A stretch of 63,807 bases of DNA from Octopus bimaculoides (GCF_001194135.2 NC_068981.1:81738394-81802200); one strand, 5' to 3'; numbered from the stretch's first letter, positions 1,790 through 60,399 are shown. Numbers and translations: made by a program. The notes: generated from the sequence alone by a model not told the origin.

Positions 1790-3142
1790 ATGTTTTGGTC
1801 GGGTTTTATGTTACTATTGCCCATTCAAGTAAGGAGTTGTTGACTGAGATGTACCCAGGTATAGGTGGATTGTCTGTTATTCCTTGAAGAAATTTGTCCA
1901 GGTTTCATTTGAAGGTGATGGTATGTTTTTCTTCTTTGATTTGTTTTGGGATAATGTTAAAATAGAGCAGGACCTGTCGAAGGAAAAGAAATTGTGTTGT
2001 AATGAATTTATGTGCTGTGATCCTGAATAGTGTGGGAGGCATATACCACGTGGTCCCAGCCTTGGATAAATTCTGAATCTAATGTGAAGGTCTTATGCTG
2101 ATGATGTATTCTCCACATTGTGCAACTGATGTAGCACTGACAACAGTGTTGGAGTAAATAAAGTTTCTATGTTTTACAATGGTCCCAATAATCAAAATCA
2201 GCCATGCCCTTGATTTTTTAGTGAACTTTCTGGGGTGGCTCAATTCTTGCAACGTTTTGCTTTGTGTGGGAAGACCACAGGTGTAGCAGGATTCTAGGTG
2301 TAGCCCTAAAAAGGAAGAGAAGAGAGGAATGATGACATCTTGCTCTCTGACCAGAAAGTTCTGAGGATCCAGGAGCTCGTCCTGCGAACTATATCCACTT
2401 TATTATTGATGTGGATACTCCGGCTGTGATTGTTGTCAACAATCACTGTAAAGTCACTAAATGTTATTGTGAGTGGTTCCTCTGATTGAAGAGAATCTGT
2501 TTGGTTAAACGTAATCTTTTTTTTCCAAAATGCATCAGTTTAAATTTTCCCTCATTTAACAACATTTTGTTTTTGTCTGCCAGTTGGCTTACAGCATGCA
2601 GATCCGTCTGGAGTTCAGTTCGGCCTTGTTATCTATTGATAATCTTCAGGAGCTTGGTTTCAACTGCAAATATGTTTACTTTGCTGTGTTTGATGACGTT
2701 TGAAATGCCGTTTGTGTGTTGTGTTGGCACTCTGTCGCTCACGACGTCGACGGTTCCAGTTGATCCGATCAACGGAACAGCCTGCTCGTGAAATTAACGT
2801 GCAAATGGCTGAGTACTCCACAGACACGTGTACCTTAACGTAGTTCCCGGGGATATTCAGCGTGACACAGTGTAACAGAAACAGGAAGAAAGAGTGAGAG
2901 AAAGTTGTGGTGAAAGAGTACAGCAGGGTTCGCCACCATCTCCTGCCGGAGCCTCGTGGAGCTTTAGGTGTTTTTGCTCAATAAACACTCACAACGCCCG
3001 GTCTGGGAATCGAAACTGCGATCCTATGACCGCGAGTCCGCTGCCCTAACCACTGGGCCATTGCGCCTCCACTATGTCGTTTATATAGACGATAATCAGA
3101 AATGGGTCCAAAACAGTCCCCTGAGAGACACCACTGGTGATT
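1790..3142 (-). mobile_element. CR1/L2-group LINE remnant (RT domains to 3' end), split by a SINE
   Basis: SGVSQGTVLDPFLIIVYINDI / SNVIKHSKVNIFAVETKLL...LQTDLHAVSQLADKNKMLLNEGKFKLMHFG, with LDKFL...PGY...NSLLEWA further 3'. Confidence 0.75.
2714..3073 (-). mobile_element. tRNA-derived SINE (family C), full length, with a 9-bp TSD
   Basis: A box TGGCCCAGTGG and B box GTTTCGATTCC. Flanked by atgccgttt (2705-2713) and atgtcgttt (3074-3082). Homologous to 58800-59181. Confidence 0.9.
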
Positions 3143-4807: not shown

Positions 4808-6189
4808 TAATTAAAACCAAAGTCCTAATAAGTAGGAAGGTAGGAAAACACAAACCTCTTCAGGTAGATGGCCCTGCTCAATCTGTAGAAAAGGCATAGG
4901 TAGAAACTTTATAAGATGTACTGAGTGCAAGCTATGACACATAAGCGGTGCAGCAATATCAAAGGAAGGTTAACTAGCAAGATAGTTTTTGTATGTGGCA
5001 GATGTTCAGGAGCAGTAAACACTGAAAATGTGCAGAAAACAACTTCTGCCACATTCCAGGGAGAAAAACTAGATGTAGTTGATAGCTTCCACTATCTAGG
5101 TGACCAAGTTAGTAGTGGGGGAGGGTGCGCTGAAAGTGTAGCTGCTAGAATAAGAATAGCCTGGGCAAAGTTCAGAGAGCTCTTACCTCTGCTGGTGACA
5201 AAGGGCCTCTCTCTCAGAGTAAAAGACAGACTGTATGACGCATGTGTACGAATAGACATGCTACATAGCAGTGAAACATGGNNNNNNNNNNNNNNNNNNA
5301 CATGGGCCGTGACTGCTGAGGACATGCGTAAGCTCAAAAGGAATGAAGCCAGTATGCTCCGATGGATGTGTAATGTCAGTGTGCATACTCGGCAGAGTGT
5401 AAGTACCTTGAGAGAAAAGTTAGACCTAAGAAGCATCAGTTGTGGTGTGCAAGAGAGACGATTGCGCTGGTACGGTCACGTGGCAAGAATGGATGAGGAT
5501 AGCTGTGTGAAAAAATGCCACACCCTAGCAGGTGAGGGAACCTGTGGAAGAGGCAGGCCAGGAAGACCTGGGATGAGGTGGTGAAGCATGACCTTCGAAC
5601 ATTAGGCCTCACCGAGGCAATGACTTCTGACTGAGACCTTTGGAAATATGCTGTGCATGAGAAGAACCAGCAAGCCAAGTGAGACCAAAATCCAAAGCCT
5701 CTGCCAGGGATGTAGCTAGCCCACTTATGCGTACCTTTCCTTCATTGGACACTAAACTCGGCTTGTGAAGACCTGTTGAGACAAGCGAAAGCGAAATTGT
5801 GATGGTACCTGTACCAGTGGAGTGCTAAGAGCACCAAGTGTGATCGTTACCAGCATCGCCTTCCTGGCACTTGTGCCAGTGGCACGTCAAAAGTCATTCG
5901 AGCGAGATTGTTGCCAGTGCCGCTGGACTGGCTCCTGTGCAGGTGGCACGTAAAATACACCATTTTGAGCGTGGCTGTTGCCAGTAGCACCTGACTGGCC
6001 TTTGTGCCGGTGGCATGTAAAAGCACCCACTACACTCTTGGAGTGGTTGGCGTTAGGAAGAGCATCCAGCTGTAGAAACTCTGCCAAATCAGATTGGAGC
6101 TTGGTGTAGCCATCGGGTTTCACCAGTCCTCAATCAAATCGTCCAACCCATGCTAGCATGGAAAGCGGACGTTAAACGATGATGATGAT
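4808..6189 (+). mobile_element. 5'-truncated RTE-clade LINE with a PHD-like finger, RT C-terminus, repetitive 3' UTR and (GAT)n tail
   Basis: FHYLGDQV...RIRIAWAKFRELLPLL...SETW...RRLRWYGHVARM...RGRP. Ends in atgatgatgat. Confidence 0.9.
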
Positions 6190-6429
6190 ATATATATATA
6201 TATATATATATGACAGATACATAAATACTTAACTACAGTGAAGTACGTTTGCAACATATAAGCTATTTTTCAGATTAAAATATAATGTACATCACATTCT
6301 TTGCCTTGAAATGTAGATCATCCAATCATAAACAGTGACTTTGCCATTTCAACCAGTTAAACTAATGTCAAACTGCAATGCATTAATCTTGGTTTCATAC
6401 AGTCTGTGTTAAGTTAAAATTTTCTGTGG

Positions 6430-16075: not shown

Positions 16076-16576
16076 CCTGATGTGAGTTGTCTCACTTGCC
16101 TATGATTAACTTTCAGGTGCTTTTAACACCAGACACATTGAGAATATATTCATTTATACCGAAAATGCAGCTGATCCATGAACTAACAATACACACACCT
16201 TATGTAGGTGTGTTTGATTTTGTTTATATACCTCAAGCTGCTTCTAATTCATATTTGAATTATTTTCTATGACATGAAATGTTGGGACATGCCAGCAGAT
16301 GGTTTTCAAACTATTTAGCATATAGTCATAGTTGGCAATATGGCTTGCAGCAGGCCTTGTTCAGCACATGACATTGAAAAGTCACAACAATGACAAAACA
16401 TTGATGCTTGTTGTTCCAGGAAGGGACCTGATGTGAGTTGTCTCACTTGCCTATGATTTACTTCCAGATGTTTTTAACATCAGGCACATTGAGAATATAT
16501 TCTCATATGCCTAAAATGCAGTTGACTCATGAACTAACAACACACACACCTTGCGTATGTGTGTTCAATTTTGTTT

Positions 16577-22072: not shown

Positions 22073-22296
22073 CAGATTTTTTCTGCCTGAGGTTGGAGAA
22101 CCTTCTTGGCTGCTGCTTGGACTTGCGGAATGAGACGATAGGTTGCCACTAAGAAGGTAAAGATCCTCACAAGAACCTCCCCAACTTGATCTCATAATTG
22201 GTTGAGCTTTCATACTGTTTGAAGAGTTGATCAAGCTGCCTACAACAGCAACTCGTTTACTTTTGCGTATGGCTTCAGATCGTTCAAAGTTTTCAT
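22073..22296 (-). CDS. sowah: Internal exon (224 nt, phase 1-0): (D)ENFERSEAIRKSKRVAVVGSLINSSNSMKAQPIMRSSWGGSCEDLYLLSGNLSSHSASPSSSQEGSPTSGRKNL
   Basis: Acceptor ctttctcttttctccattccAG and donor GTATGC. The Ser-rich frame is stop-free, overlaps ORF 21911-22234(-), and has phases matching both neighbours. Confidence 0.8.
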
Positions 22297-23583
22297 CTGG
22301 AATGGAGAAAAGAGAAAGATAAAGGGAAATGAGAAAGCAAAAGTTACCAAAAATATATAGAATGAATGACTATTGAGAATGTAGCTGATTAGCAAAAGTC
22401 TATTTATAATGAAGATGTGAAATAGTCAAGTCTATAGAATATCAGGCAAGCAACTTTTGGCTCACAGAGCCATATGGAGCTTGCCTGATATTTTAGAAGT
22501 TGTTCAGATGTTTTGTTTATCCTGTTTGAGTTAGTTCAAGTAGCTATGGAGAATATTTACCAGATCTTCCAGGAAATGCTATCCATGATAAGAACATAGC
22601 TAGTAATATTGATAACACCACCCAAAACTTCATATCAGGTCACTATGTCTTTGTTGAAGACAACTTTTACAAATCAGGTTCATATAACTCTTAAATAAGC
22701 ACCAGGTTTTGATGTATCTCAGCATTGTCAACACTAAATAGCACTCTGCAATCAATGGAAGCTGTTTCGTACTCTGACTGGGTATATTTTCTTACACAAC
22801 AACTTAGAGTAACCCAATCTATTTTCAGAATTCTAAAATGGAATTGATATTAATGGCCATGTAGTAGATGGAAATTCTATTAACGATGAGTTAGCTCTTA
22901 TTTAATAATTTCAACTGAATATAATGACAAGTAGGTTTATAGGCTACAGTATAGAGGCTTAGAAGTACAGATACCATTTATTCTCATTTTAAGTCATATT
23001 GGCAAATTTTGAAATGATGTTAATGAAACCTTAAATTTGTATAATAATAATTATGAATACTAACAGACATTAAAACATAAAAATATGAGTGGTGGGAGTT
23101 GCTGTAGTTAATTAAACTTACACCATTGTTTTATATTTTTATTTGTTTCAGTCATTTGACTGTGGCCATGCTAGAGCACCACCTATTTTACTGCTTATTT
23201 TACTGATCTAAGTAGGAAGACATTCAAAGGTGAGAGTAAAGTGATGTCAGCAATGCCACTCTATAGATCTGGCCATCCTTCTGTAATAAGGATGAGGAAG
23301 ATAATGATTCCCAAAATTGTTAAGGAAGGATGGATGGACACAGACATAGCTGAATGTTTAAGTTTGCTTTACAATCAGGAGATCATAGGTTTGACCTGAC
23401 TACCACAGAATCTTGAGTTAGTGTTTTCTACTGCATTCTTGGATTGATCTAAACCTTGTGGATGAAACTGAGTAGACAGAAACTGTGTGGAAGCCTGTTG
23501 GATTGTATTGGTAATTCAAGAGCCCAACCTAATCATACAGAGACAATGCTGATTTGACCTGAAAATTACATTACGGATACATA

Positions 23584-23625
23584 TGGCTGTGGAATACTCA
23601 GTCACACTAATTCACTGAGAAAATC
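23584..23625. repeat. Left arm of a perfect 42-bp inverted repeat
   Basis: tggctgtggaatactcagtcacactaattcactgagaaaatc is the exact reverse complement of 25066-25107. Confidence 0.95.
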
Positions 23626-24031
23626 ATTCAGTTGGTTGAACAACTGAATGTTCATTTGTCAAAATTGATAGAAACTCCATTCTATTTAGAGGATGGAGTT
23701 AGTTTGTACATATTTTATTAATCCTGGATTAAAGATGAAAGACAAGATCAACCATGGTGGGGTTGAACGTCAAAGTACCAAAGGATTGAAGTAAAAAGTA
23801 AAGCATTTAGTCGAAAAATTGACACACACTGTAGAGAGGAGTCCATAGCATCTGATTGCTAGTTTACATTAGTAACACTACAGTGATGATAGGTAAAGCC
23901 TGCTTTTAAACATTAGCACAATTCTTGACTGCTACTTATAACAGTATTAGGAGATGCCATCCTTTCCATCAACATCATCATTACCATTCTTTTTACATCC
24001 AAAATATTGTGATAGTTGGAATTTTACTCAC

Positions 24032-24064
24032 CAAATGACTTCACCGATCGAGTTTGTAAAAGTT
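24032..24064 (-). CDS. sowah: Small internal exon (33 nt, phase 1-1) of the same gene: (Q)LLQTRSVKSF
   Basis: Long pyrimidine tract cctttctgttctttttctctttgtAG and donor GTGAGT. It joins in frame to give ...SARCQ-QLLQTRSVKSF-DENFERS... Confidence 0.75.
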
Positions 24065-24363
24065 CTACAAAGAGAAAAAGAACAGAAAGGAAAAAAATAT
24101 TAGATTAATTAGCTGACAATATTGACTTATAAATTAGGTACAAAGTTACACATTTTTTTTAAACAAGGGTATACAGTCAGATATACTGATCCCCAATACC
24201 TGCTTCATTCTAATTTTTTTCCATCTAAGAAAGATAAAAGGAAAAGTCAATCTCAATTTTGGCAGGAACTACTCATGGATTAACAGATAATACAAGGAAG
24301 GAAGGGAATTAGGAATACAGAAAAATTAATATGAAAAACAGGCAAAATATATCAAACAATACT

Positions 24364-24510
24364 TGGCGTTAGGAAGGGCATCCAGCTGTAGAAACTCTGC
24401 CAAATTAGATTGGAGCCTGGTGTTGCCATCCGGTTTCACCAGTCCTCAGTCAAATCGTCCAACCCATGCTAGCATGGAAAGCGGACGTTAAACGATGATG
24501 ATGATGATGA
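24364..24510 (+). mobile_element. RTE-family 3' tail copy with a (GAT)n end
   Basis: Near-identical to 6047-6189. Confidence 0.9.
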
Positions 24511-25065
24511 TATATGTATGTATGTATTTATTAGACATGTATAGAGATAGGCAGATAAATAAGGACAGAGAAACATGCACACATACACATTATATATATA
24601 CACACACACGCACATATATATTTATATATGTGCATGTGGTGTGTATGAGAGATATGTTACTGAAGTAAAAGTGATTGATTTAATGTGTGATGAGCTAAAA
24701 CATGCAAACTAACATTATATTGTTAGAACAGCAGAGAGGTAGTGAGGAAGAAACTGAAGATGTTCCTCCATGATGTTGCTCTGTGTACAATTAGAAATGT
24801 CACAAATGAAAAACAGAGCTTCAATGTGGTTGCTCATCCTGCAAGAACTTGTGGTAAAATCACCCTCAATTCATACCCTACGCTTTTAAAGCAGGATGCT
24901 TTGTAAAATATAGTCCTTAGACATGATGGTTACAGATAGAATGTCTTTGATCAGGAGTCACCCCATTGTTCACCTAAAACAACAGTGGAAATATCAGAAG
25001 CTAATTGCCACAGTATCACTGTAAAACAAAAATTTTCAACTGGAGTTGTAACCCCAACAATGAAG

Positions 25066-25107
25066 GATTTTCTCAGTGAATTAGTGTGACTGAGTATTCC
25101 ACAGCCA
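25066..25107. repeat. Right arm of the perfect 42-bp inverted repeat
   Basis: gattttctcagtgaattagtgtgactgagtattccacagcca. Confidence 0.95.
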
Positions 25108-25777
25108 ATGAAGGGTGACAGAGGGTACCCGTAAGAGTTTAATTTCATTTAAGAGATTGAAAATATATCATGAAAACTGGGGGAATAGGTGAAGATATAG
25201 AAGAACAGTAAAGGAAAGATATATGAGGAAGGAGAAATAGAGGCAGATTTAGAAGAGGACAATAAAACAAAAAAAAAGAAAGAAAGAAAAAGAGGTGAAG
25301 ATGAACAACCGAAACTATGGGCTTTACTTAAAACTGTCAGAAGATAGTTCACTGGAAAAGAATGGTAGTCTATTGTAGATATAAGGCATTCAACTCCAGA
25401 AGTCATAATATCTATTCTGGAAACAATGACATCACTTAAACCAGAATTAAGTACCTTTCCCTCAATCTCTCTCCCACACATATTTGAATACTGTTCAAGC
25501 ACTTTTAATACAAATCCATTTAACACATTAGATTAAAATAAAAATCTCATAAAATGAAAGACAAGATTTCAGTTGGTCAAAGCCATATTAATATGTCTGT
25601 AGTTCAGTCAAACTTTCTTTCACTACCCAAAGTGTGGTCATATAAATATGATTTATGCTTATGACCGTCTATTGCATTGATTGATTTAACTTATAAATGC
25701 AGTGATGGCTCATATCTATGGATTTACTCCAGAATAAAATTTTGTATGGAAAATAAACACTGCTTACACATCAGTAA

Positions 25778-28499: not shown

Positions 28500-28540
28500 T
28501 ATCCAACGACAACAAAGCACCATATAGGTAGAATTATAAA

Positions 28541-29127
28541 TATATAAAGCAGGTGTACAGAAAGTACAATCATTGCTAGAAATAGTAACAGTTTACAGCG
28601 CTATGTTGAGCTTCACTGAATATTTACAGGCAGAGATGTGTGCAAGTGTGAATATAAGAAAATTCTTAACTCTATGGAGAGGAATAAAGGATAACTCAAT
28701 ACTGCAGTTTTAAACTCTCCAGATCAGATGCGTGAACACGAATCAGATTGGTTACCATGGATGACCAATTTTTAAAATACCCACTACATCACTGCCTGCT
28801 TACTTGGCTGATAGCCCCAGTCATAACCAGAATCAAGATCAGAGATGTAGTGGCTATCTTAAAATTTGGTCTTCCACAGTAGACTCAACTGACAATAACC
28901 AATCAAATTTTTGCTCACACACAAGATCTGGAGAGTTTGAAACTGCAGTATTCAGTTACCCTTTATTCTTCTAACTGTTTCCATAGAGGTAAGACAGGAT
29001 TTTCCTATATTCACAGCCCACACACATTGCTGCCTGTAAATATTCAGTGAAGCTCTACATAGCGTTGTAAACTTACCCGCTGATATTTCTAGCAATGATT
29101 GTGCTTCATGTACACCTGCTTTATATA
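28541..29127. mobile_element. Foldback (fully palindromic) element of about 590 bp in a TA context
   Basis: Arms 28541-28794 and 28840-29127 are imperfect reverse complements along their whole length, around a 45-nt loop. Confidence 0.85.
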
Positions 29128-32100
29128 TATATATATATATATATNNNNNNNNNNNNNNNNNNNNNNNNNNNNNNNNNNNNNNNNNNNNNNNNNNNNNNNN
29201 NNNNNNNNNNNNNNNNNNNNNNNNNNNNNNNNNNNNNNNNNNNNNNNNNNNNNNNNNNNNNNNNNNNNNNNNNNNNNNNNNNNNNNNNNNNNNNNNNNNN
29301 NNNNNNNNNNNNNNNNNNNNNNNNNNNNNNNNNNNNNNNNNNNNNNNNNNNNNNNNNNNNNNNNNNNNNNNNNNNNNNNNNNNNNNNNNNNNNNNNNNNN
29401 NNNNNNNNNNNNNNNNNNNNNNNNNNNNNNNNNNNNNNNNNNNNNNNNNNNNNNNNNNNNNNNNNNNNNNNNNNNNNNNNNNNNNNNNNNNNNNNNNNNN
29501 NNNNNNNNNNNNNNNNNNNNNNNNNNNNNNNNNNNNNNNNNNNNNNNNNNNNNNNNNNNNNNNNNNNNNNNNNNNNNNNNNNNNNNNNNNNNNNNNNNNN
29601 NNNNGGGTGAAAGTGTTAACAAGAACAGACAGTGACAACAAGACAGTAAAAGACAGTAAAAACAAGACAGAACAGTGAAAACAAACGGTAAGGGCTGTTA
29701 GGCCAGGACGATAGAAAAATTATTATTTTGAACGCTAGTTAGATGTGAATGAGAGACAAAAAAATCACGTCTTCTCTATAGGAAGGCAGGAAATAGAAAG
29801 AAAGAATCCCTTTCGTCACATCATGTGTCAGCGACAAGAGGGTCAAGGAGGAGGAGTGAGAGAGAGAGGGAACGGTGAAAGGAAGAGAAGAATAGGGGAG
29901 GGTTGGGAGAGAAAAGCAGAAAGGATGAAGAACAAGAGATAGAGAGAGAGATAGACAGGGAAGTAATAGTAGTAGAGTGTGCAGTAGTAATTATTAAGAT
30001 AAAACTTACTTGGAGACAGTGCGTGGCGTTCGATCATATAATAACATAAATAATATATAATTATATGCATATATCCATACATATATGTACATACCTACAT
30101 CTATATGTATACATACATGCATATATGGGTACAGGACATCACAAAAAACGTTAAACACAGATGGCATGGTTTGGATGAGTTTTCTTGATGCAGTATTCTA
30201 GTGCTTGACTCTTCTCTTGGCAACAAGTCCTTACTTGTTTTCACATGTTAAACTGCTGAGGCACAAGACCATTTTTGCTTACGCAGTGTCAATAACCAAG
30301 ACACTTGGAAAGAAAGAAACACTCACACCCACATTTATATGTGACAAGTTTCCATATAGTTTCTGTCTACCTAATTTCACTCATAAGGCATCTGTCAACC
30401 TGAGGATATAGTAGCAGGCATTCACCCAAGGTATCACACAGTCACATATCACCCAGAACCATAAGGTTACAAGGTCAGCTTCTCACACACACAGAGATAT
30501 ATATGTAATACTGGTTTCAACAGTAACATATCACTTTCTGCGAGTGTCAGGTCAACCAAACAACAGTGATGCAATAAGTTGCTAAATAACACTGGCCAAA
30601 TTATAAGAGCAAGAAAGAACAGAAGGGAGTTTTCAACAGGGTAGGATGTTGTTTAAGGAATGTACATAAATGACTTAACATTGATAAAGTGCTTCTGGAT
30701 TGTGAAAAAGGAATCATGTTGAAAAGAAAATGAAATCAGAAATACAATTTACTTATCAATTAATGGTTATATATTACTATGTGATTAATTATACAAAGAT
30801 TACATCAGAATTAGGGTCCTAATTTTCTCTCCTAGTCTCTTCCCCTTCCAGTGCACAGTAACAACAATGCATAGAAAAAAATCAACGAAGTAACAACAAT
30901 TCATAGAAAAAAAATTCTATATAATCACTTGACATAATACAACAATCACATTTCCTAGAACACTCCTCGTACATGTGAAGTAGCATCTGTACCATAAGGA
31001 GGATGTGATACAACAGGGAAGTAAGTATTGACACTGAATGCATTGTTCTTGCATCAGCTTTTATAATTTAAGTCTGTTCAAAGAGATCTAATGAGAAGAT
31101 ACTCAACATCAACAAAATAAAAATGTTGAAAAGCAAAGCAAAAGCAGGGCAAGGTGACAAAATGAGGTTATATTTTATCATGAACAAAAACATTAAAAAA
31201 CAATGAAGGGAGAGGTGGGTAGCAGCTGAGAGCAAAGTTATGAACACAACAGTCAGAATACTGCCAACATACCAGGGCTAATCATAGATTGCATGCATAG
31301 CATGCTTGCATTCTCAAACACTTAAAATGCAACATTAAGTGCCACAGACACCTACAGAATAAACAAGTGAATCATTAAAATTACTGAGACATCCTAAATT
31401 TGTTTCATTCTGAAAGTGAAAAGTTCCAATATATTTTAATTCTCCAGTTCTATGTTTAAATTAATAATTCTTATAATCACATTGTTTAAGAATGGCAAAC
31501 TGACAGAAACTGTAAAGTATCAGATTAAATACCCTTCACACTCAACTCATGTCCTTTTGATGTTGACTTCACATTTCACTCATGATAATTTGATAAAATA
31601 AGATACTGTAACTGATTCAGCTGATACATCTTCTCTACAAAATATAGATTTATGACTTGTAAGAAGAAGCCATTATTATATTTTAATTAATTCCTCAATT
31701 CCAAAAATGTTCACTTCAGGGAGAAATAATAAATAAAAGTTTTAGAAATTGTGTCCCTTTGCTCTTTTAACCAAAATTAGTTATTGAAATAATCATTATT
31801 CTCATCACTAAAGATGTAATTTTAATTAGTTAAAATTTATTGATTTAGTACATTAAATATGCTGGTACTCACTTTACTACTGAGTTTTCATACTGAAAGT
31901 ATCCCTATTTTTTCTTTTCTCTTTTTTACATAAACATTACTTTTTATTACTATGTCCCTCAGAATTCATTCACAAAGACAAAAAGAGAACGAAACAATAA
32001 CAACAACAACAACAAACATCCCTAAGGACTATACTTCGCTGATAAGATCAGCTCAGACTGAAACATGCCTGGAGTTGACACTGAACTGTTAAAGATCATT

Positions 32101-34305: not shown

Positions 34306-34899
34306 ATGCATATATCTATATCTATCTATATATATATATATATATATATATGCATGCACNNNNNNNNNNNNNNNNNNNNNNNNNNTATATATATATATAT
34401 ATATATATATATGCATGCACACATTTTATATATCATCAATTAACATGCAAAGTGGCCGAGTACTACACAGATGAGTAATTCTCAGGTAGAATCAGAACAG
34501 CACTATTGAATTAGTGGCACAATCTGACAGGTTTCTAAACAGTTTCCATTTATCCATTTTCATTCACACAGTTTGGGTTGACCAGATGCCATGTTAAATG
34601 TGCTGTGATAAGGAAATAATACCACTTTCTCTTCAACTATACTGTCTAACCGCAAGTAGAGAAAATTAATAAAAATAAAAAAAAATAATTGTTTGACTTG
34701 CCTATATGATAGCTCAGAAGCCAAAAATGGGTGTCACAGAGTTTAGTGAAATAACAAAGGAGTAATATTATAAATGTGAGAAACATAAACAAATAATGGA
34801 ACATTACGCATAAGAAATATAAAAGAAAACACATAGTACAGTGTATCATGAGGTACATAGAAAAAAAGTTGTAAAAACATGGAACAAAATAGGTGTTAT

Positions 34900-52804: not shown

Positions 52805-53005
52805 CCAGACTGGCCTTCATGCGGGTGACATGTAAAAGCACCCACTACACTCTCTGAGTGGTTGGCGTTAGAAAGGGCATCCAGCTGTAGAAACTCTGCC
52901 AAATCAGATTGGAGGCTGGTGTTGCCATCCGGTTTCACCAGTCCTCAGTCAAATCGTCCAACCCATGCTAGCATGGAAAGCGGACGTTAAATGATGATGA
53001 TGATC
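52805..53005 (+). mobile_element. RTE-family 3' tail copy with a (GAT)n end
   Basis: Near-identical to 5990-6189. Confidence 0.9.
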
Positions 53006-56560: not shown

Positions 56561-56778
56561 CAGTAGAAACTCGGTTTTTGAACAACTCTGATCACGAATA
56601 AATCGTACTTCATCTCCTGTCTTTCTCATATTCCTTTAATACAGTAGTACTCCGGTTTATGAACGCTTCTGATCATGAACAAATCATGCTTTATATATAT
56701 CTATATTATATATATCCATATATATATAAAGCACAATTTATTTGCGATCAGAGTTTTTCAAAAAGCGAGGTACTACTG
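56561..56778. mobile_element. Tigger-like hairpin MITE (56642-56778) with an extra left-arm copy (56561-56610)
   Basis: TA-CAGTAGTAC...TGATC...gctttatatata / tatatataaagc...GATCA...GTACTACTG-TA. Confidence 0.75.
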
Positions 56779-57928
56779 TATGTCATAGTGTTGCTTATTA
56801 AACCCATGCCAGCAAGGAAACACATTCAATGCTAAAAGATGATTCTTGTACGCAGGCATGAGACCAACTGTTGAAAAAGAATGGATTATTATACGTAGCA
56901 TTAACACCTGTATATTTCAGGTAATATGTAAACTTAGTCATGGAAACTGGAACTGAGAAAAGGGAAAGTAATTACTATAATGAAATTGATAAACCATATG
57001 GTTTTCCAATTTTATATTACTCTCTCAGTGAAATATAAATAATTATAAAAATGATTTTCTTATATTAACATAAGATCACAAATTGAAGAGGGATGGCTCT
57101 GTAAGATTTAGTTAGCCAAGACATGTCATATGTTACAATAGTACCATAGAACTCCTGAAGGGGCCAAAGACAAGGCACATTCGTTTAAGACCACAAATTT
57201 GTAGTAAAAACATCATGTTTTATCCACTGAAGAATATTGGTGGTAGTCAATTTATAAATTCCGAAAGGATAGGAAAAAATAAAAACACCACAAATAGGTG
57301 AAGTATTGAGTTGATTGACTGAATTGAGTTCAAGATCCCAGATATATGAGCAGAGTAAGTCGATTACAGGGAGATCTGAACTCAAAGTCGTGGAAGAAAA
57401 CTGAATACTGTAAAAAAACTGCTCTTCTGTTTCCAGACCCCCAACCATCTTATTATAATAATGACAACAACAATAACTACGATTATATCACAGGTCCATG
57501 GCAACACATATTTGAAAGTGTTATAGTTGATATAACTTCACTGAACCTCAATTAATCGACCCAAAAAGAGTGACAAAAGATAACCTAGAATTTGAAATTT
57601 AAGAGTAGTTAAATACCAGAATGTATACTTTCTGGTACTCTACTTTTTATGTCTGATTTTCTTTCGAAGACAATGAAATCAGTTATCCTTTTCATTAATG
57701 AAGAGGACATAGTCGATTAAATTAATACTGAAAACACACGAGTTGTGTCTATTTTCATCATCTTCTGGTGGAATGACTTGTAAAACAAAACAAAGAAACG
57801 AGGGATTTTGATGAAAGAAACGACTGAAAATAAAATACTAAGAAGGATAACTGTGACATTTTGTCAAGAGTTATCTCCTTCTAAATTATGCAAATCGACT
57901 AGAATTTGTTCATAAACAGTTACACAAA

Positions 57929-58415: not shown

Positions 58416-58496
58416 GTTGACACCTGGCGGATGCAGAACTGCTCAAATATTGCTTTGGTTTCTTACCACTGTGGTCCCTGATGTTTGGGTTGGCTT
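58416..58496 (-). CDS. sowah: Internal exon (81 nt, phase 1-1) of an ankyrin-repeat gene, sosondowah/SOWAH-like: (x)ANPNIRDHSGKKPKQYLSSSASARCQ
   Basis: Acceptor ttctatttcttcacAG at 58497-58499 and donor GTAAGC at 58415-58410. The peptide carries the IRDxSGKKxxQYL motif that I recognise as the end of the last ankyrin repeat in SOWAH-family proteins (recall, no database search). Confidence 0.75.
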
Positions 58497-58799: not shown

Positions 58800-59181
58800 G
58801 AGGCGCAATGGCCCAGTGGTTAGGGCAGCGGACTCGTAGTCATAGGATCGCGGTTTCGATTCCCAGACGGGGCGTTATGAGTGTTTATAGAGTGAAAACA
58901 CCTAAAGCTCCACAAAGCTCTGGCAGGGGATGGTGGCGAACCCTGCTGTACTCTTTCACCACAACTTTCTCTCACTCTTACTTCCTGTTTCTGTTGTGCC
59001 TGTAATTCAAAGGGTCAGCCTTGTCACACTGTGTCATGCTGAATATCCCCGAGAACTACGTTAAGGGTACATGTGTCTGTAGAGTGCTCAGCCACTTGCA
59101 CATTAATTTCACGAGCAGGCTGTTTTGTTGATCAGATCAACTGGAACCCTCGATGTCGTAAGCAACGGAGTGCCAACAACA
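58800..59181 (+). mobile_element. tRNA-derived SINE (family C), full length, with a 9-bp TSD
   Basis: A and B boxes present. ATGCTAGCA at 58791-58799 and 59182-59190. Confidence 0.9.
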
Positions 59182-59688: not shown

Positions 59689-59710
59689 AAAGTTAGTTTG
59701 GAGGGATATA

Positions 59711-60301
59711 GGATCTTTTTTAAAACGGGGGCCACATTTTTCATTAACGAAACACTTTGAAACTTGGAACACTGGTAGAATGTGTCATATAAAACATCTT
59801 TTTCTCTTAGTCTTCTTAACAAAAAAAGAAATCCATAAATTATTCCATGTTAAAGTTGTCGTATTTCTGTAATTTCAACCAATCACTGACGTCCATTCAG
59901 CCGATATACATTAAGCGCCGACTACATAAACAAACGATTCTGAAACAATTAACCCTAACCCTAACCCTAACTCTAACCCTAACCCTAACCGTAGGGTTAG
60001 GGTTAGAGTTAGGGTTAGGGTTAGGGTTAAAGCAAATTTAAAATGAAAAAAGCAAATAAAACGAAGAATCGTTTGTTTATGTAGTCGGCACTTAATGTAT
60101 ATCGGCTGAATGGACGTCAGTGATTGGTTGAAATTATCGAAATAAGACAATTTTTTACATGAAATAAATTCGAATACAAAAATATTTTTCTGTTCTATAA
60201 CACAAAATAGATAAGTATACGAAGTTTGAAAGTCTTTCGGTACCAAAAACACTACGTAAAACATTAATGAAAAATGTGGCCCCCCGTTTTAAAAAAGATC
60301 C
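59711..60301. mobile_element. Foldback MITE with an 8-bp TSD and central mirrored (CCCTAA)n/(TTAGGG)n arrays
   Basis: TSD GGGATATA at 59703-59710 and 60302-60309, terminal IR of about 37 bp starting GGATCTTTTTTAAAACGGGGGCC, and inner IR 59870-59941 / 60066-60136. Confidence 0.9.
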
Positions 60302-60399
60302 GGGATATATTATCCGGGTGGATACTGTATTAGCTCTCGGTTAAGTTCCAGTTAACAGCTAACCATTTGCAACAGTGAGTAGTCACAGTGGCAGAAGCA

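Follow-up and report, generated by a model that had tools for sequence, protein, structure and literature searches.

A near-perfect inverted repeat around a conserved octopus microexon points to a short templated insertion

The window analysed here, a 63,807-nt stretch of the Octopus bimaculoides genome (GCF_001194135.2, NC_068981.1:81738394-81802200; positions are counted from its first letter), contains an exact 42-bp inverted repeat whose arms lie on either side of a conserved microexon in an ankyrin-repeat gene. This inverted repeat is probably the outcome of one fairly recent copying event at the DNA level, and the stem that it can form in the RNA would then be incidental and unselected. 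According to the model that we favour, a 39-nt stretch (23586-23624) of a decayed intronic SINE fragment would have been copied in inverted orientation to a site 1.4 kb away, where the target was duplicated as the 9-nt direct repeat CAATGAAGG, as when a short templated insertion fills a staggered break. Chance microhomology of the target with the flanks of the donor would stretch the 39-nt copy to the 42/42 and 46/47 matches that are seen, and in the resulting pre-mRNA a duplex of 42-47 bp would enclose the microexon in a loop of 1.43 kb. The perfect identity of the arms would be explained by youth and not by constraint, and a single, recent templated insertion accounts for the evidence better than two old pieces that were kept complementary would.

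Structure of the inverted repeat

The core of the repeat is formed by positions 23584-23625 and 25066-25107, which are exact reverse complements at all 42 positions, a result on which direct reading of the sequence, a repeat finder and a mismatch-tolerant pattern search agree. The extended arms comprise positions 23584-23630 (left arm, the downstream one in the minus-strand transcript) and 25061-25107 (right arm, the upstream one), which are complementary at 46 of 47 positions and are separated by 1430 nt. The single mismatch, position 25065, falls inside the left copy of the direct repeat CAATGAAGG, and the arm core holds an internal CTCAGT/ACTGAG hairpin. Past the 47 nt, the flanks show no significant similarity on the inner side (p=0.30). 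On the outer side the similarity is marginal, with p=0.018 when 40 nt are tested and p=0.15 when 100 nt are, and consists of AAATTACATTACGGATAC as compared with AAATTAAACTCTTACGGGTAC, displaced by 14 nt. The exact repeat, its short extension, the abrupt divergence of its flanks and the internal hairpin had all been put forward in a preliminary description of this DNA, and are borne out here. No third copy of the arm with three mismatches or fewer was recovered from the window by the mismatch-tolerant search, and none of 100 shuffled sequences contained a match to the arm pattern. Random sequence would be most unlikely to yield such an inverted repeat by chance.

With inverted segments of about 45 bp at its two ends, the locus resembles a DNA transposon with terminal inverted repeats (TIRs) or a MITE, and the length of the arms would suit TIRs; the assembly of the window, a gapped short-read draft with 11 runs of N, also brings an artefact to mind. 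That the arms are the TIRs of a 1.5-kb DNA transposon, or that they were created by assembly, is nevertheless very improbable. The outer ends of the arms (GATACATA and ATGAAGGG) show no target-site duplication (TSD) and the left 'terminus' runs on into SINE homology, whereas a genuine TIR element elsewhere in the window (59711-60301) is flanked by the 8-bp TSD GGGATATA. Artefacts do not create a 39-nt insert flanked by a TSD, and the nearest run of N is more than 4 kb from the arms. A TIR transposon or MITE was rejected on account of the missing outer TSD and of the position of the left arm internal to a SINE copy, and an old foldback element was likewise rejected, the repeat finder having detected, in the sequence between the arms, no inverted pairs that are nested in register.

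Several other repeats are present in the window. The TIR element is about 590 nt long, has TIRs of about 37 nt, and spans 59703-60309 when the two TSD copies (59703-59710 and 60302-60309) are included; it carries long inner inverted arms (59852-59941 and 60065-60154, 94%) and, at its centre, head-to-head telomere-type (CCCTAA)n and (TTAGGG)n arrays (59947-60038), and looks like a hAT-like MITE or a foldback element with interstitial telomeric repeats. Another palindromic element, about 620 nt in length (28524-29144) and composed of nested inverted pairs that are 83-92% complementary, adjoins an assembly gap (29145-29604). Local tandem duplications occur at 16076-16502 (period of about 351 nt, with exact blocks of 32 and 18 nt) and at 1-266 (period of about 152 nt, 95% identity). 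Between the two arms lies a young copy (24363-24527, plus strand) of an abundant, unrelated SINE, of which three copies are found in the window (6047-6209, 24363-24527 and 52862-53004; 93-97% mutual identity), with the motifs GGGCATCCAGCTGTAGAAACTCTGCC and CCCATGCTAGCATGGAAAGCGGACG.

Relationship of the arms to SINE family C

The preliminary description had noted a resemblance between the arm core and a SINE family, here termed family C, and this resemblance is real according to both profile and alignment matches. The family C profile was built from two full copies located at 58800-59181 (plus strand) and 2720-3069 (minus strand). Compared with BLAST and MAFFT within the window, these copies are approximately 91% alike and 350-382 nt in length, one of the two having an internal deletion of 30 nt. 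Both begin with tRNA-like A- and B-box motifs (TGGCCCAGTGG ... GGTTTCGATTCC) that were recognised by eye; ARAGORN called no tRNA in these SINE heads, and Rfam likewise flagged neither full copy.

The left arm is contained in a decayed, partial copy of this SINE (23502-23646, plus strand), which corresponds to profile positions 194-344 of 381 and was detected by nhmmer with E=6.8e-10 in an alignment that runs through the arm and through the sequence on both sides. When this copy is compared with the SINE consensus, 53 of 81 positions match in the flank (65%) and 29 of 47 in the arm (62%), so that the arm differs at 18 of the 47 aligned positions, besides a 6-nt deletion. The arm has therefore decayed as much as its flanks and is no better preserved than its surroundings. 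As the profile is collinear through the arm and both sides with equally low identity, the left arm is part of an old SINE fragment that decayed in place.

The right locus has a different appearance. Here the family C profile matches 28 nt only (25107-25080, E=1.3), and nhmmer detected no SINE homology around the right arm past the arm itself; the right arm is an isolated piece that has no SINE context. For a pair of independent inverted SINE insertions, the right arm would have to be embedded in SINE-length homology, and it is not. Of the earlier proposal that the arms are two old SINE-derived pieces, the part concerning the left arm stands and the part concerning the right arm does not. Within the shared 42-nt core, moreover, the right arm has all the private changes of the left arm, including the 6-nt deletion, while the consensus form is retained at 34438-34528, in a further old copy of this SINE module. 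Since the right arm carries these private changes, it has to have been copied from the left arm, or from a sequence identical to it, after the decay had taken place.

Insertion signature at the right arm

The inferred donor (23586-23624) is, as its reverse complement, identical at 39 of 39 positions to the inserted copy (25067-25105); the 39-mer reads ATTTTCTCAGTGAATTAGTGTGACTGAGTATTCCACAGC. The copy is flanked on both sides by the direct repeat CAATGAAGG (25058-25066 and 25106-25114), exact at 9 of 9 positions with a period of 48, which constitutes a putative target-site duplication. Outside the 39-nt insert, the paired bases are TGAA.G on the inner side and CA on the outer; they fall within the duplicated target, and would represent microhomology between the target and the flanks of the donor: the left copy of the direct repeat matches the donor flank at 6 of 9 bases and holds the mismatch of the extended arms, and the first two bases of the right copy (CA) match the donor flank as well. 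Two features expected of a templated insertion with target-site duplication are thus present, namely an insert identical to a nearby donor and an exact direct repeat of the target on either side of it. The anatomy of the locus, the direction from donor to copy and the duplication of the target can be read directly from the DNA; the pathway of repair or insertion, and the young age of the event, we infer.

The number of flanking 9-nt direct repeats expected by chance is about 0.013, an estimate for a repeat found after the fact that allows a generous tolerance of +/-6 nt and that is based on the window's own non-low-complexity 9-mer direct repeats at spacings of 35-65 nt. Part of the 9-nt direct repeat could be copied sequence instead of target, given that its left copy agrees with the flank of the donor at 6 of the 9 bases. 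The 39+9 positions that can be compared contain no differences, which bounds the pairwise divergence only to approximately 6-7%, so that 'recent' is to be understood as relative; set against the decay of about 35% in the donor, the copying event would be young. The empty site that existed before the insertion is predicted to read ...AACCCCAACAATGAAGGGTGACAGAGGG...

Templated insertions, often inverted and with microhomology at their junctions, are documented products of break repair (PMC2943611, PMC11724301). Like these, the octopus insert is a short inverted copy of nearby sequence and displays microhomology between donor flank and target. The insertions reported are mostly of 5-34 bp, with a template within tens of bases of the break, whereas the octopus insert measures 39 bp and has its template 1.4 kb away; the duplication of 9 bp of target sequence that accompanies it implies that the break was staggered.

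The main alternative is short-tract gene conversion, according to which the right site would be a very old inverted SINE relic whose core was homogenised by a tract of 40-50 nt. A perfect core between decayed flanks would likewise be produced in this manner, and the marginal outward similarity, together with a weak 'GTTGG...CAACT' resemblance inward, could be regarded as remains of such a relic. We consider it unlikely, because nhmmer sees no SINE homology around the right arm except in the arm, the inward resemblance is not significant, and the exact direct repeat that flanks the copy would be left to chance (about 0.01).

A TSD-like repeat around the right arm is also what a mobile insertion would leave, and both arms might be recent insertions from a repeat subfamily, or a short mobile unit, that is young and perhaps abundant and has the arm sequence as its consensus. 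There is little probability in this reading: the left arm is collinear with the family C profile throughout, no other copies occur in 61.7 kb of repeat-rich sequence, and the presumed unit would be an internal SINE piece of 39 nt having neither tail, TIRs nor head. A templated insertion, copied from the left arm, is the origin that we retain for the right arm.

The microexon and its host gene

Both arms are intronic in a minus-strand ankyrin-repeat gene, between an upstream coding exon (58416-58496, minus strand) and a downstream one (22073-22296, minus strand). The upstream exon (...ANPNIRDHSGKKPKQYLSSSASARCQ) forms the end of the ankyrin-repeat region and terminates with ...SARCQ plus one base, its last base being 58416; the downstream exon (DENFERSEAIRKSKR...RKNL) begins at 22296 with DENFERSE. 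The microexon (24032-24064, minus strand) encodes QLLQTRSVKSF, is 33 nt long and in phase 1-1, and has a strong polypyrimidine tract with an AG acceptor and the donor G/GTGAGT. It lies inside the 1.43-kb loop, the arms being located 1002 nt upstream and 407 nt downstream of it in transcript terms. These measurements agree with the approximate distances of 1.0 and 0.4 kb given previously, and the frame-preserving character of the exon, with its AG and GT sites, was confirmed. It had further been suggested that skipping keeps the reading frame and removes QLLQTRSVKSF; the frame is kept, but the deletion of the 11 residues would not be clean, because the junction codon becomes C/AT (His), so that QLLQTRSVKSFD is replaced by a single H.

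The exons in the window, the downstream exon among them, are 100% identical to the UniRef entry A0A0L8FUS6_OCTBM (P0001) of Octopus bimaculoides, a fragmentary model that includes the microexon. Upstream, Pfam detected only ankyrin repeats, and the Pfam and PDB searches gave no indication of the identity of the gene beyond generic ankyrin repeats. The first exon of the A0A0L8FUS6 model (MYGYMHIIIYYLCYYMIERHALSP) corresponds to 30011-30082, inside the 34-kb intron, and has the look of an ab initio prediction artefact; two database models seem to divide the real gene between them. A metaclust protein (P0003) joins the ...SARCQ exon to an alternative exon at 56776-56868 (minus strand) that encodes LGLMPAYKNHLLALNVFPCWHGFNKQHYDIQ. 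The FPCWHGFN motif of this alternative exon resembles translations of the abundant SINE, and the exon may therefore have arisen by exonisation of a SINE, or may represent an alternative 3' end within the 34-kb intron.

The microexon in a distant cephalopod

A homologous microexon was found in a 1776-nt Logan contig (L001, run ERR12370320) from a distant cephalopod, in which the adjacent exon has 76% nucleotide identity and about 70% protein identity to its octopus counterpart. The microexon of L001 (986-1024) is 39 nt long (QILQTRTHTDKPL), is bounded by AG and GT sites and preserves the frame, and is followed by an intron of 376 nt and then by the DEFERSE exon. Its N-terminal [L/I]LQTR part is conserved between the two species and the remainder varies. 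The arms have no homologue in L001, where the inverted pairs around the microexon are all weak and A/T-rich. The microexon would accordingly function elsewhere in the absence of the stem, and this comparison suggests that the microexon is old and that the arms are not.

Other searches returned few sequences. A protein search with the exon peptides recovered only the O. bimaculoides UniRef fragment, one ORF from a distant cephalopod and one transcript fragment, while a search with intronic ORFs spanning the right arm gave zero matches, and exact look-ups of P0001 and of two ORFs of the window gave none. The 23-mers of the arms had no matches in metagenome and prokaryote-genome collections, a result that carries no information, since even a 29-mer of an abundant octopus SINE matched one metagenome contig only.

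Frequency of such repeats and comparison with known systems

Near-perfect inverted repeats of this type are reported to be exceptionally frequent in Octopus bimaculoides and have been tied to hyper-editing by ADAR (Porath et al. 2017, PMC5625713). In that study, 0.44% (4.4e-3) of random O. bimaculoides 50-mers have a match in reverse orientation over at least 40 bp, with more than 95% identity and within 2 kb. When the same definition is applied to the window, 494 of 61,700 bases are contained in arms, at 5 loci, two of which are not of low complexity: the repeat described here and the TIR element at 59.8-60.1 kb. Our repeat falls exactly within this definition (47-48 nt at 46/47, loop length 1430 nt, inside one transcript), and it concerns the same species and a transcribed intron; the published study differs in that it provides genome-wide statistics only and does not name the present locus. 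The repeat is an unexceptional representative of a known class, which is abundant in the Octopus bimaculoides genome. At the density found in the window, chance may on a rough estimate place such a pair around a small exon in a few percent of cases.

Inverted intronic Alu repeats shift flanking exons from constitutive to alternative splicing (Lev-Maor et al. 2008, PMC2533698). The octopus arms resemble these pairs in being SINE-derived, oppositely oriented, intronic, within approximately 1.5 kb of each other and close to an exon; a long duplex is predicted, and editing as well as a shift toward alternative splicing would be expected. They differ in that an Alu element is about 300 bp long and the octopus arms are 42-47 bp and flank the exon on both sides, and in that the arms would not derive from two independent retropositions, one being a 39-nt secondary copy of the other. 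Similarly, the bracketing of an exon by intronic complements recalls the exon looping and back-splicing that is mediated by complementary sequences (reviewed in PMC7404189), yet an exon of 33 nt is too short for typical circRNAs. Functional long-range RNA structures are defined by conservation and covariation (PMC7404189), whereas the octopus arms show no covariation and are absent from the related contig L001.

Predicted duplex and its possible consequences for editing and splicing

Folding of a 1.8-kb segment of the minus-strand pre-mRNA with ViennaRNA places 46 of the 47 arm positions in pairs in the minimum free energy structure, with pair probabilities of about 1. The isolated arm duplex has a predicted free energy of -79.8 kcal/mol, as compared with about -8 kcal/mol for the hairpin that each arm can form by itself. 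On these calculations, the arms would pair over a long range into a very stable duplex that encloses the microexon. The upstream arm would be transcribed first, and the duplex could form once the downstream arm emerges, 1.3 kb ahead of the next acceptor. On the RNA strand the two arms contain 15 and 13 adenosines, and formation of dsRNA followed by ADAR editing of the arms is plausible by analogy; as the locus belongs to the abundant inverted-repeat dsRNA class of Octopus bimaculoides introns, its arms are probably hyper-edited. A known structured RNA or miRNA was rejected, there being zero Rfam matches at the gathering score in the whole window; near the arms, Rfam produced only sub-threshold miRNA matches, which fall on a CA/TA microsatellite (24571-24661).

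The preliminary description had proposed that complementarity of the arms was kept for the sake of a long-range stem in the pre-mRNA, by which the microexon is looped out and its skipping controlled, and which may serve as an ADAR substrate. The thermodynamic strength of the stem, its position around both splice sites of a conserved, frame-preserving microexon, and the known effect of inverted intronic repeats on flanking exons (Lev-Maor et al. 2008, PMC2533698) are all in keeping with such a role. Selection for the stem is nonetheless improbable. The arms share some 18 substitutions and a 6-nt deletion, for each of which this proposal calls for a compensated double event, where one copying would suffice; and before that copying the left arm was no better conserved than its flanking sequence. 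The claim that the arms were kept complementary does not survive the finding that the right arm shares all the private changes of the left one and contains a 39/39 insert between 9-nt direct repeats. No covariation exists between the arms, the 42-nt core being identical and the sole difference being a non-pairing mismatch in the duplicated target; perfect identity with neither G-U pairs nor covariation is what youth predicts. The high base rate of such repeats in O. bimaculoides and the presence of the microexon, but not of the arms, in L001 also speak against a selected stem.

If the arms originated by templated insertion, the stem might, by analogy with the Alu pairs, mildly favour skipping of the microexon; such an effect would be incidental, not the work of a switch under selection. 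There is a slim chance that a new stem, created by a lineage-specific insertion, has already been co-opted, in which case inclusion of QLLQTRSVKSF would be conditional, depending for example on tissue or temperature, and ADAR editing of the arms would tune the strength of the stem.

Implications

In the octopus genome, a perfect short inverted repeat amid decayed surroundings is not in itself evidence of selection. The present locus bears the scars expected of a single copying: a direction of copying, private mutations that the two arms have in common, and a target duplicated over 9 nt. Intronic dsRNA substrates can, on this evidence, arise from short templated insertions as well as from pairs of transposons, and insertions of this kind may add to the high density of near-perfect inverted repeats in the octopus. 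The predicted empty site provides a presence/absence marker with which the copying event could be dated. Should the stem have been co-opted, the locus would represent a splicing switch in the course of being born from DNA-repair filler; and should the stem be functional, it would link the repeat-derived dsRNA and ADAR editing of the octopus to the regulation of a deeply conserved microexon.
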